NCBI GenBank assembly: GCA_004764695.1
Contig: SMSO01000014.1
Span: forward strand, 4,784,845 to 4,848,844
DNA from: Schizochytrium sp. TIO01
Lineage: Eukaryota; Protista; Bigyra: Labyrinthulomycetes
DNA: 64,000 nt
Direction: 5' to 3'
The notes beneath the pieces are model-generated. The model was not told the DNA's origin and ran no database searches. It worked only from the letters and a program-made list of their open reading frames with translations. The position numbers and the translations under genes are program-made. Positions 10,391 to 21,941 of this stretch are shown in pieces. Within the stretch, counting starts at the first letter, position 1, and the number at the start of each line of letters is the position of its first letter.

Positions 10391-11203
10391 AGTATTGCAA
10401 GTCACTCGTTAACCCGCACAACCTTGCACCAGGCGACTGCAGCCTTTTTCTTTACTGAGCCACACACACATTTAAACAGTTTGCTCGCTGCTATCATATC
10501 ATCTCTCTTTCGTTCCAACTTCTCTCTGTGACCAATGTTTATCCGGGTGCAAATGCCACCCCGATCTTCGAACCGGGTGATGCCGCCAAACCATCAATGT
10601 AGAATTTCGTTGGCGCTCTTGCTTGCATTGTCTCAACGCAACAGCACCGCTCGCGAAACCAAACCATCGAATTACAATTGACCGTACTTACCACACTTAC
10701 AAATATAAGAAAAAATAAAAAAGAGAAAAGGACTCATGCTCTAAGCATGTTGCTGTATCTCCTGCATAAACACGATCTTGCACCCCCACCCTCCTCCACT
10801 TCTTCATAATTTTCAGTTCTAGACTGCCTTGTTAGGATGAGATTTATTTGTTAGTCTCCATAGTAGGTGCTGGAGTTCTTCTGCCGCCAGAGTTTTTGGT
10901 TTTTTTTTAGCAAAGATAATGATAAGGATCAACGTAAATCATAGCGCATGTTTTGTAAACCCTTCAGTTAAAACCTTATTTTGCACTCTAGTCTAGAAAC
11001 AAACGGCTAACTATATTCACATTTTACTAGGATTGCTTGAATAATCTAGCCTGATCTACATGCTTCTATAGATAATGTCCCACGCATGTGAAATGTGAAA
11101 ATTTGACTTGTGTTGTATAGTAAAGTGTAGCAATTGCTATTAGTACTTTCTTTGAATCAATTCCTATTTATCGTGGAGTTCATGCTGACCCAGAGAGAGA
11201 GCC

Positions 11204-12616
11204 ATGAAAACCTGTGACGACTCTGAAGATGTCGAAACTCTGCACTCTGAGGTCCTAAATGGTTGGAGCGGGCGTTTGCCCAGAGTGCTGGCGTGGGCCA
11301 GTCTTGGAGATGCCGTCTCAGTTCCAATGCATTGGTACTATGACCTCGCACAACTTTGGCTGGACTACCCTCTTACGGCAAGGGAAAGACGCGGAGAGAT
11401 AGAGATACAATCTGTGCGTCAAGACATTTCACACCCGGACTCGTGGGACTACTTTAGAACTACCGAACCACATGATGCTTGGGCGCACCCGGTAGACCTG
11501 TTTCATGACCGAGCCCGTTTTTACGGACTTGAGGGCAGCCATTACCATGGTTGCCTTCGCCCAGGGGAAGTGACATTGACCATGAGGCTCTCTTGTGAAC
11601 TTTTTCGGAGCATCCAATCCCAAAACCAGGCGTATAATACTCTAGATTATCTGAGGCGATACCAGCGAATATTACTGGAACCAGGACAGCATCATGATAC
11701 GTACATTGAGTCCGCCCACAGAGCTTTCATGCGAGCAAGAGCACATGCGATAGATCCTGCCGTGATCCCGAGAGGAGACCGAGATGGGGATTGTTTGGCT
11801 GGTCTTGTGCTTGCCTTGCCTCTTCTTGTCAGAGGGAGCATAAAGGGGGCATCACATGAGCAAAAAGGCAGCAAGGAACCTAGGGTCTATACAGCAAAGC
11901 AATGGATTGCACGAACAACCAAAGAACCAGCACCACAATTATCGTTTTTGTCAAATTCAAATCGTGATCAACAATCAATAATACCCTCAGACGAAGATCT
12001 ATCGTCCAAACTGGTACTCAAAGGACAACCAGATTCAATAACTTGGAATAATTTTGAGAGTGAAGAAAGTCGAGCTTTCACAGGAGATGCATGGACAATC
12101 CGTCGATGTCCAGAGTTATGGTACCCTCTTCTCCAGCACATAAGTCTCACACACTCTAACTGGCGGGTTCTTACGGCTGCACATCTCCTTGCCCAGTTGT
12201 TTGGACACTCACTCAACAAAGAAGGAGTCATTAATGCAATCGTTGAGCTTGAGCGGGTTTGCCATAGCGAACAATGCTTGACAGCAACTGTCATAAGAAA
12301 ACAAATACGAAGGGATGTTCAATGCTGTGCTTTATCGATGCGAACCATGGATATCGCAGGTGTGGACGAGTGCCTTCGGTCATCGCTATTGGGAGGGCCC
12401 AGGTGGAACAGATGATATATACGCATGGGTGCTCTAACTAGCACCTTGATTCTGTTTCTTGCATGGCTCGAGGCAGAGCTCCCTCCGCAGACTCTACTTG
12501 TAATCAATGCACACTTAGGTGGAGATTGCACACATCGAGGTGCCATCTTGGGCGCCTTTATTGCCACCTTGGACATTCAATTTTGGCAAGTTTCAAAATC
12601 CGCAAGTTGGCTTTAG
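11204..12616 (+). CDS. ADP-ribosylglycohydrolase / J1-crystallin / SelJ-like protein, about 470 aa, probable selenoprotein (UGA=Sec at 12413-12415)
   Basis: ORFs 11204-12415 and 12425-12616 are in the same frame. The junction reads AGG TGG AAC AGA TGA TAT ATA CGC ATG = RWNR*YIRM. Family motifs lie on both sides: LGDAVSVPMHWYYD, HYHGCLRPGEVTL, HHDTYIESAHR and LTH before the TGA, and NAHLGGDCTHRGAILGA after it. Confidence 0.8.
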
Positions 12617-12762
12617 CAAAGACAAGTTTAAAGCAGTTAGTTTTCCTTAGCATATATTTTAAAGTCTGCTAAGTAACAACTTTATTGTCGACGCAAAGTT
12701 GTACATACTAAACACATCTCGATTGCACATTTCGCTAAACTTTTTTAACCCTCTCTCTCTCT

Positions 12763-12855
12763 CATGGGAAACCTGCTAACGATAACATAATGACGGCGCC
12801 GCTGTAAACAGAACTTCAATCAATGCAGCCTGCAAGCGTCCGCCCGACACCCATG
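12763..12855 (+). promoter_or_regulatory. Candidate SECIS element in the 3' UTR of the ARH-family gene
   Basis: AUGAC (12790-12794), an 11-nt arm GGCGCCGCUGU, AAA (12806-12808), a 3' arm UGCAAGCGUCCGCC and then C-GA-C (12845-12848). Distal CAUGGG (12763-12768) can pair with CCCAUG (12850-12855). Folded by eye only. The apical region is rather long and helix II is imperfect. Confidence 0.6.
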
Positions 12856-13080
12856 CGGTATATCGGAGGCACCCTCAACAATAAACAAAGGTCACTGAAG
12901 GTCTTGCATTTGAAAACTATATAAAATTTAACTTTCCTATTCTTTTTTACGTTCTTTGTTTTAAGGAACCCCCCCGCCCCCAATCAAGTCAAGCCCCATT
13001 CACATGACAAATCCCACTCTTACCTACTAAACCTGAAGATACCTAGCTTGTTAACGAGGTTGTCATCAACGCAGCATTCT

Positions 13081-13828
13081 ATAACTTTGGTATTCCAGAA
13101 CCGCATTACGCGTGTCCCAAATGGAAAATCTCATTAGGTAAACACGCTATTACGCATTGGAGAGAAGGGTAGTCTATTTTAATTGAGTCTTTACGTTGGA
13201 TTTCCATGGGTTATACAGTGTGGCTAGTGGTTTCCACGGAAATCGAGCATCTCAAACTACACGGTGACAACGCAGTGACGAAGCGTGACGGCACGCAAGA
13301 CAATCAAGAAAGAGTGCAATTTAGCTCGTACTAGGAACATACGTGTCTATCCAACGAAAGACCACGCACTCAACTCAAAAAATGGGTTCGCATTACTAAA
13401 AGACCTTACAATGTTGGTGTTACCTTTCATTATGATTTATTCAAAGTATAGAGACAAGACCACGGCCCTGCATCAAGATGCATGCATCATGAAGAATCCT
13501 AAGACGACGCAAGTCCTGAAAGACAAAGAAGACAATCCTAAAATGTTCAGCGATAGCTATGGAGAAAAAGAAGCAGCGCGCCTTAAAGAAAGCACGGATG
13601 CGCCTGATTGGGTCTTCGAAGTACCACAACTTGTGCGCGATTCAGAAATCAATAATTTCTTCAAAGCTTTGTACGTTGGTGGGGCCAAAAACTGAGAAAT
13701 TTGCCGGCAAAAAGGAACTTGGAATTCGCTCTTTCTACAAGTTACGTATAAAATGTGATAAAGCCCAAATATCGAGGTTGGGTGACGCGACTGGAGCAGA
13801 AGGAAACATTTACATATTGAAAAGATAA
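13081..13828 (+). mobile_element. Degenerate TnpB/Fanzor-like (IS607-type) element relic, N-terminal half only
   Basis: Restoring one base near 13364 gives RTRNIRVYPTKDQRTQLKKWVRITKRPYNVGV, matching the TnpB/Fanzor N-terminal pattern IRxYPTxxQxxxLxxWxxxxRxxYN. It is followed later by PDWVFEVPQLVRDSEINNFFKA. There are multiple frameshifts and stops, and no RuvC motifs are seen downstream. Confidence 0.6.
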
Positions 13829-20801: not shown

Positions 20802-20905
20802 GAAAGAATGAAAGAATGAAAGAATGAAAGAATGAAAGAATGAAAGAATGAAAGAATGAAAGAATGAAAGAATGAAAGAATGAAAGAATGAAAGAATGAA
20901 AGAAT
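20802..20905. repeat. (GAAAGAAT)13 octanucleotide tandem repeat
   Basis: Directly visible perfect array. Confidence 0.95.
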
Positions 20906-21941
20906 GAATGTGCTGTGGAAATCAAGCATCGATGAAAATGCCTTTCGCTGGTGGTGCGCGGGTGAGCAGGCGCAGAGGGAGGAAAGGCAGTCTGGGCAGG
21001 CACGAGCTCTGTGCACTATGGCAGTCGGTTCTCCGATTTGTTGCGACACCACCACAAATGAGATGAATGTTGAAGCAGTGATTGATTTTTTTTCGTTTTC
21101 TTTCGGAATTAATAATTAATTAATTGATTACAATTGCTGGAAAGAAACATTAATTGATTATGTTGAGGAACAAGAACGGCGCTGTAAAATGATGCAGCAT
21201 CGCCAAGAAAGCAGCGGAAAACCTGCAGCGAGCTGAGCGAGGCGTACCGGGAGGCCTCTGCGCTGCGCAGGCCAAGGCAGGGCATGAGCTTGCTCGGGTC
21301 TGCGCGAAGAAGAAGCCCCATCCATTCCTTCGCATTCGAGCTCGCATTTATTCATCACGCCTCGCCTTCTTCCCATTGTAATGTAAACGACCGTCTCATT
21401 CATTATCGATTGATTTGATGATTATGAAACTGATGATACAACGATAAATAATAAGAATAAAAAGAAGAAGAAGAAGAAGAAAAGAAGAAGAGCTCACAGA
21501 ATGGCTTGGCTGTCCTTGCTCGGCGCCTCTTCAGCCTGCCTGAAGTGGGGAAACTGCCACGCCTCCTCGTATCGCTACGCCTTCGCTCGTGCATGCTCGT
21601 GCCTCTTTGGGTTGAAGCCGATCTATCGAAGGGCTGATTGATCGTACAGAAGGAAGGAGAGAAGGAAATCCAAGTTTTACCTCGAACGATCGTAAGCAAG
21701 GGCGCTAGGGGTATCCTTAAGGGTCGTTAGAGATTGAAGCATCCATCGCAGTCGAATCATTGTTGGAGAGAGAAGAAACAGAGTTTGATTGTTTGATTGT
21801 TTGGCTATTTATTTGGTTGTTTGTTGGGGTTTGTTGGGGTTTGTTTGTTTGTGTATGGTATTACACGAAAGGAGAAGAAACGATCATTGCTTAGAGTCGC
21901 TCGTTTCAAAGAATAGGTTTTGGATCTAGAGCAGAAGATGA

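Follow-up and report, generated by a model that had tools for sequence, protein, structure and literature searches.

SELENOJ is a relative of the jellyfish J1-crystallins in a family of ADP-ribosylation enzymes and has no known function (PMC13134290; PMC3473315). The protein has been reported in ray-finned fishes, sea urchin and amphioxus (PMC13134290, PMC3473315), with both selenocysteine (Sec) and Cys forms also reported from algae, including a form with two Sec residues in Alexandrium (PMC7539508). Because these reports include algae, Sec in the ADP-ribosylglycohydrolase (ARH) superfamily and outside animals was already known, and the novelty of the gene described here is lower than the initial annotation of this DNA had assumed (PMC7539508). 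The literature search retrieved no paper on thraustochytrid selenoproteins and none linking the terms 'ADP-ribosylglycohydrolase' and 'selenoprotein' in this sense. The database names of the relatives are only 'ADP-ribosylglycohydrolase' or 'hypothetical', never SelJ.

Two further groups of proteins are close enough for comparison. The Cys-form 'HWYYD' ARH-like proteins of Chlamydomonas, Chlorella, Gonium, Cymbomonas and a Pirellulaceae metagenome-assembled genome, which are annotated as ADP-ribosylglycohydrolase, share the motifs GDA..P.HWYYD, HYH, NDTY.E, C..D.H, A-C-Y-I and GGDNCH-RG..LGA. These proteins have Cys where the gene studied here has UGA, and they fall into a separate clade with a support of 99. 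The canonical ADP-ribosylhydrolases MJ1187 (1T5J), DraG (2WOC/3G9D) and ARH3 (2FOZ) have the same fold, as judged from the model of the Cys homologue P0120, at an identity of 12-17%, and their Glu and GGD-T-D-S are changed to His and GGD-N-C-H in the subfamily.

The window, which is the whole stretch of 64,000 nucleotides of Schizochytrium sp. TIO01 DNA analysed here, carries at 11204-12616 of its forward strand a gene whose probable product is like the SELENOJ/J1-crystallin subfamily in being a Sec-containing protein of the ARH superfamily with Cys homologues. It differs from the described members in its host, a heterotrophic stramenopile, and in its closest named homologue, which is from the thraustochytrid Mucochytrium. 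The protein is also divergent, with an insert of ~45 residues compared with the Mucochytrium protein, GGD-C-T-H in place of GGD-N-C-H in the loop and a C-terminus shorter than those of the homologues. The name 'SelJ' is used for the window protein as a family-level label.

An ATG at 11204 starts an ORF of 403 codons (11204-12412) that is closed by a TGA at 12413-12415. After the TGA, the same frame is open for 66 more codons (Y-I-R-M-G-A-L..., 12416-12616 with the stop) up to a TAG at 12614-12616, so that the single stop between two ORFs of one frame, which the initial annotation had described, is confirmed. Read through, the product has 470 residues with the TGA as codon 404. The first piece corresponds to the N-terminal two thirds of an ARH-fold protein, contains the motifs GDA..P.HWYYD, HYH, HDTYIE and DC-L-G-L, and scores 127-132 bits against the profile of the Cys forms. 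The second piece holds the helix after the putative Sec and the GGD-C-T-H-RGAILGA motif. The two pieces were searched separately and were joined with an X at the break for profile searches and alignments; the U was written as C for one alignment display. In Pfam, residues 67-207 of the first piece match positions 32-132 of PF03747 (ADP_ribosyl_GH) with an E-value of 3e-5, and residues 10-50 of the second piece match positions 236-276 with an E-value of 2.7e-3. Each piece alone is under the Pfam cut-off of 26.2 bits (24.3 and 17.8 bits, respectively). Since both match the profile in colinear order, they represent one ARH domain broken by a single stop. The gene ends with a 3' UTR of 333 nt (12617-12949), whose end is set by the ends of transcript-like contigs at 12948/12949 and within which a candidate SECIS lies at 12790-12847. 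Standard gene callers had been expected to truncate such a gene, and they do, calling 403 of the ~470 residues, also in the ORF of the MMETSP transcript.

The closest named homologue, A0A7S2RNV1 of Mucochytrium quahogii, is 35% identical and ends at the same place with the tail ..G-P-K-W-N-R. An exhaustive HMMER search with a two-sequence profile retrieved 368 relatives, 87 of which were aligned with MAFFT to the first piece, X and the second piece in one sequence. In this alignment, the X column is the Cys of [F/Y]-S-[P/T]-A-C-Y-[I/L] in the full-length homologues, and the second piece aligns with their ..N-x-N-x-G-G-D-N-C-H-R-G-A-x-L-G-A.. segment. The Cys is at least 90% conserved among the Cys forms in an alignment of 23 sequences (A4). 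Against the Cys-form profile, the second piece alone scores 26 bits (E 2.6e-10), compared with at most 1.6 bits in 200 shuffles, and the joined sequence scores 154 bits with the X on the consensus Cys. Thus, in the alignment as in the profile, the TGA falls on the Cys of C-Y-I, which is nearly invariant and is the place where the TGA had been proposed to lie. Among the 152 listed representatives at the 50% identity level, ~33 have no C-terminal motif and stop precisely at the Sec column, with tails of ..F-S-[L/S/I/V]-[R/S] or ..W-N-R. The entries concerned, such as P0002, P0005, P0006, P0010 and P0013, include the Mucochytrium protein and Clim_evm6s150 of Corallochytrium limacisporum in EukProt, which ends in ..G-P-E-W-N-R.

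The DNA of such cut homologues was available in four JGI metagenome loci (L012-L015) that share 41-88% identity with the query P0013. In each of the four, a TGA directly follows ..F-S-L-R, and 3' of the TGA the frame continues into Y-[G/N]-A-x-A-G-V-x-L-L-A-Y-K-Y and then G-G-D-x-C-H-R-G-x-L-L-G-A. Homologues that keep the TGA together with conserved coding sequence downstream, which the initial annotation had named as a check, are therefore present. A FastTree phylogeny built from the residues that precede the Sec/Cys column placed the truncated forms in one clade with an SH-like support of 99 and the Cys forms in the other, also with 99. The window protein lies inside the clade of the truncated forms, hereafter the Sec clade, on a long branch (1.6), which leaves its exact place within the clade unsure. 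P0097, which is in the Sec clade, is no Cys form and has the tail ..L-F-S-K-R.

A second in-frame TGA is present three codons before the final TAG in three of the metagenome loci (L012:1469-1483, L013:1198-1212 and L014:1325-1339). The tails read ..C-S-S-TGA-H-K-K-TAG in L012 and ..C-S-T-TGA-Q-K-K-TAG in L013, giving a C-terminal C-x-x-U motif that is absent from the window protein. With these C-x-x-U tails, the products of L012, L013 and L014 are probable two-Sec proteins, and the second TGA may be related to the 2-Sec SELENOJ of Alexandrium (PMC7539508).

The conservation on both sides of the TGA is difficult to reconcile with a reading in which the TGA is a true stop, the product is a C-terminally truncated ARH-like protein of 403 residues and the 66 codons downstream are a relic. 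Such a relic would fit the weak and atypical SECIS described below, the short and divergent C-terminal piece with its GGD-C-T-H, the long branch of the window gene and the 403 residues given by the gene callers and MMETSP. However, the stop is located at the exact column where four distant homologues keep a TGA followed by conserved coding sequence and where Cys is otherwise nearly invariant, and the downstream frame is open for all 66 codons and matches the family profile with the E-value given above. In addition, loss of the GGD loop and of the last helices would take away part of the fold core. We consider termination at this TGA unlikely.

Recoding of the TGA as Sec would require a dedicated machinery, and the genome of 64 Mb in 37 contigs (G000) was found to contain four components of it, a check that the initial annotation had asked for. 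A tRNA-Sec gene was detected with 70.4 bits and was classified by ARAGORN as SeC with the anticodon TCA. SepSecS and SelD were found with 279 and 278 bits, respectively, and eEFSec is present with the eukaryote-specific domains PF21208 and PF21131. The SelD match (L006, G000:C36:4255747-4256697) lies within an open frame of 647 residues, about twice the 311 positions of the SelD model, which suggests a fusion protein. The tRNA-Sec gene is ~31 kb from this SelD on the same contig. TGA ends 11 of the 33 ordinary long ORFs inspected, and it is thus not reassigned in the genome.

Four other selenoprotein genes were found. The GPx gene has its TGA at the catalytic site (N-V-A-T-T-U-G-T) and the SelT-like gene has C-T-S-U; each is followed by a textbook SECIS (L008:2284-2344 and L011:2224-2293, respectively). 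The SelK-like gene, which probably has an intron, ends in ..C-G-G-G-G-U-G-R-stop and also has a SECIS (L039:2873-2920), the elements of these three genes being clear and of the AUGA-C type. The fourth, a SelU-like gene on the minus strand (L040), contains a U-x-x-C motif (U-N-M-C), and our own pattern scan found no SECIS for it. The Sep15/SelM and MsrA genes of the genome are Cys forms and so supply no further SECIS for comparison.

The pattern used to scan for SECIS elements consisted of [A/G]UGA, an N.N pair, a helix II in which small loops are tolerated, an AA left unpaired 10-15 nt past the core, and a 3' GA. With this pattern, the elements of GPx, SelT, SelK and L012 are recovered; the element of L013 was recovered by a pair-count scan together with a constrained fold. 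The only match of the scan within the 3' UTR of the window gene is 12790-12847, where the AUGA (12790-12793) is located 174 nt 3' of the TAG, the unpaired AAA is at 12806-12808 and the GA at 12846-12847. The motif of AUGA, AAA and GA that had been noticed about 175 nt after the TAG is thus present; the distance between the AUGA and the AAA is 12 nt, which is the spacing expected of a SECIS. The fold starts with the AUGA and a C.C pair, continues through G-G-C-G/C-G-C-C, a 1x2 loop and C-G-C-U/A-G-C-G, opens into the apical region with G-U-A-A-A, and is closed by C-GA (12845-12847). Helix II therefore has only 8 bp (4 bp, the 1x2 loop and 4 bp). No helix I adjoins the core, and a lower stem forms only beyond a displaced bulge.

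Comparison with the other elements showed that the core AUGA-C...C-GA is common to the window candidate, GPx and SelT, whereas SelK has a U before the GA. MAFFT misaligned the SECIS cores. The inner fold of the candidate has an energy of -10.6 kcal/mol, compared with -11.7 for SelK, -16.0 for GPx and -26.8 for SelT (reference range, -11.7 to -30). The SECIS-type fold is 1.4 kcal/mol above the minimum free energy fold in the candidate, compared with 0.2-2.5 kcal/mol for five reference SECIS. Both strands of the window, 128 kb in total, contain 12 elements that are at least as good, corresponding to ~0.03 expected per UTR of 333 nt. The element at 12790-12847 is weak and short, and its function as a SECIS is plausible but unproven. 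The SECIS models of Rfam gave no match in the 3' UTR and none genome-wide. Rfam also misses the evident SECIS of GPx, SelT, SelK, L012 and L013, even at E<=10, and is blind to SECIS in these lineages; thus its negative result carries no weight. The 3' UTRs of L012 and L013 carry strong SECIS of the GUGA type, which makes the family as such SECIS-dependent.

Other SECIS-like signals were followed and set aside. A 5' SECIS word common to GPx and SelT (ACTGATGACG..AAA) has 14 matches in the genome compared with 11 for a control and is probably due to chance. SECIS-like matches elsewhere in the window (20904, 26296 and others) have no selenoprotein-like ORF upstream and were considered background. 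The match at 20904 is caused by a short tandem repeat at ~20860-20920, with units of GAAAGAATGAA that read K-N-E-R-M-K-E in one frame.

A weak SECIS would also count for a read-through in which the residue inserted is not Sec, with a near-cognate tRNA delivering Trp, Cys or Arg, or with programmed read-through, and UGA read-through exists in eukaryotes. However, the UGA coincides with a conserved Cys, the defining sign of Sec/Cys pairs, and the genome has both the Sec machinery and other selenoproteins. The strong 3' UTR SECIS of the homologues L012 and L013 argue in the same direction, and read-through of this kind appears very unlikely.

The integrity of the TGA was analysed by placing the Logan contigs of four runs, which bear at least three strain labels, on 10900-13300. 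The gene is covered by two long DNA-like contigs and two transcript-sized contigs, all of them colinear and without a joint. The transcript-sized contigs have 2004 nt (X8, 10952-12949) and 1766 nt (X9, 11184-12948) and derive from runs that are only tentatively presumed to be RNA; their sizes and common 3' end at 12948/9 agree with the MMETSP transcript. The ORF of this transcript (P0001) is 99% identical and also ends with ..G-G-P-R-W-N-R at the TGA. In three of the runs, 11 coding sites deviate from the window sequence, including 12417 and 12454, and 12413-12415 is identical in all four. Unchanged in the four-run contigs and ending the MMETSP ORF, the TGA is no assembly error, and no splice crosses it in the transcript-like contigs. 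The variants within the species comprise 6 nonsynonymous and 5 synonymous changes, which are too few to show constraint 3' of the TGA. At 12417, the assemblies of three other strains have TGT for TAT directly after the TGA (Y405C), reading U-C-I and not U-Y-I. This variant places a Cys next to the putative Sec, where nearly every homologue has Tyr. An artefact is so improbable as to be negligible, be it a wrong base at the TGA from sequencing or assembly or a small intron that removes the codon. An in-frame GT..AG pair 39 nt apart (12403-12441) does bracket the TGA, but the codon is the same in the MMETSP ORF and all four independent assemblies, the contigs of 1766 and 2004 nt run through it without a joint, and with the 39 nt gone the protein would lose W-N-R-U-Y-I, a conserved motif that can be aligned with the homologues.

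The proposal that the TGA is decoded as Sec to yield a protein of ~470 residues is supported by the Sec/Cys alignment, the loci L012-L015, the cut homologues, the unspliced transcript, the Sec machinery and the other selenoproteins. On these grounds, 11204-12616 is very probably a real hidden selenoprotein gene that encodes one ARH-fold protein of ~470 residues with UGA 404 as Sec. The UGA would be recoded by the eukaryotic pathway of tRNA-Sec, eEFSec and a 3' UTR SECIS, and the element at 12790-12847 is most likely the working SECIS. What was observed directly is the context of recoding and the match between Sec and Cys; from these we infer the insertion of Sec itself. The Sec would take the place of a nearly invariant Cys where the helix running into the GGDxCH loop begins; in this family, that loop is the counterpart of the metal-binding GGDTDT loop of the ARHs. 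The gene belongs to a Sec clade that is widespread in marine protists, is sister to a large Cys clade and probably corresponds to the SELENOJ-like proteins of the literature.

The AlphaFold2 model of the Cys homologue P0120 (pLDDT 92.4) has the ARH fold, with Foldseek E-values of 1e-11 to 1e-8 against 1t5j, 3o5t, DraG and ARH3 at the identities given above. The closest solved relatives in the profile search are MJ1187, Lmo0067 and DraG. An ESM Atlas search returned generic ARH clusters only. The genome also contains five canonical ARH paralogues, none of them with an internal stop. Three of these PF03747 paralogues are arranged in tandem within 11 kb (G000:C31:2423738-2434283), and two more are on C3 and C13.

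In ARH3 and DraG, two Mg/Mn ions are held by an acidic ligand set, namely the N-terminal Glu and the two Asp and the Thr of GGDTDT. The subfamily lacks this complete set. HMM alignment to MJ1187 showed that a His replaces the N-terminal Glu (P-x-H-W-Y-Y vs. P-T-E-N-L) and that G-G-D-N-C-H, or D-C-T-H in the window protein, corresponds to G-G-D-T-D-[S/T]. Since the acidic metal ligands are partly replaced, classical hydrolase activity is doubtful. The nearly invariant residues of the subfamily, in P0120 numbering, are H35, H101, H103, D158, C181, H187 and C300, the last being the Sec column. In what is the least supported part of our interpretation, we infer from these sequence changes that the Sec/Cys may act in a thiol/selenol redox or soft-metal site and not in classical ADP-ribose hydrolysis. 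A wider form of this idea is tentative and, in our judgement, rather doubtful: the ancient protist Sec clade would have kept the ARH fold, lost some of the acidic ligands for Mg/Mn and acquired a His/Cys/Sec site, the C-x-x-U tail present in some members could shuttle electrons, and the proteins would be Se-dependent redox or soft-metal enzymes rather than ADP-ribose hydrolases. A coupling of redox chemistry to the handling of ADP-ribose is speculation.

The gene belongs to a known, SELENOJ-like family, and the result is a sound correction of an annotation rather than the discovery of a novel type of system. All automatic annotations seen cut the gene short, among them the MMETSP ORF, the Mucochytrium entry in UniRef and that of Corallochytrium in EukProt, and the whole Sec clade is systematically mis-annotated in the protein databases. 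Since a fifth of the representatives are cut at this same UGA, marine protists have SELENOJ-type proteins much more often than existing records indicate. The corrected model adds a member to the small and undescribed selenoproteome of this thraustochytrid-like protist, which comprises GPx, SelT, SelK, a SelU-like protein and the product of this gene. Where the ARHs have their metal ligands, this family has conserved His, Cys and Sec; this pattern, combined with the C-x-x-U tails, provides a testable lead on the function of SELENOJ and, if the redox or soft-metal reading is true, would give the first mechanistic hypothesis for this protein.
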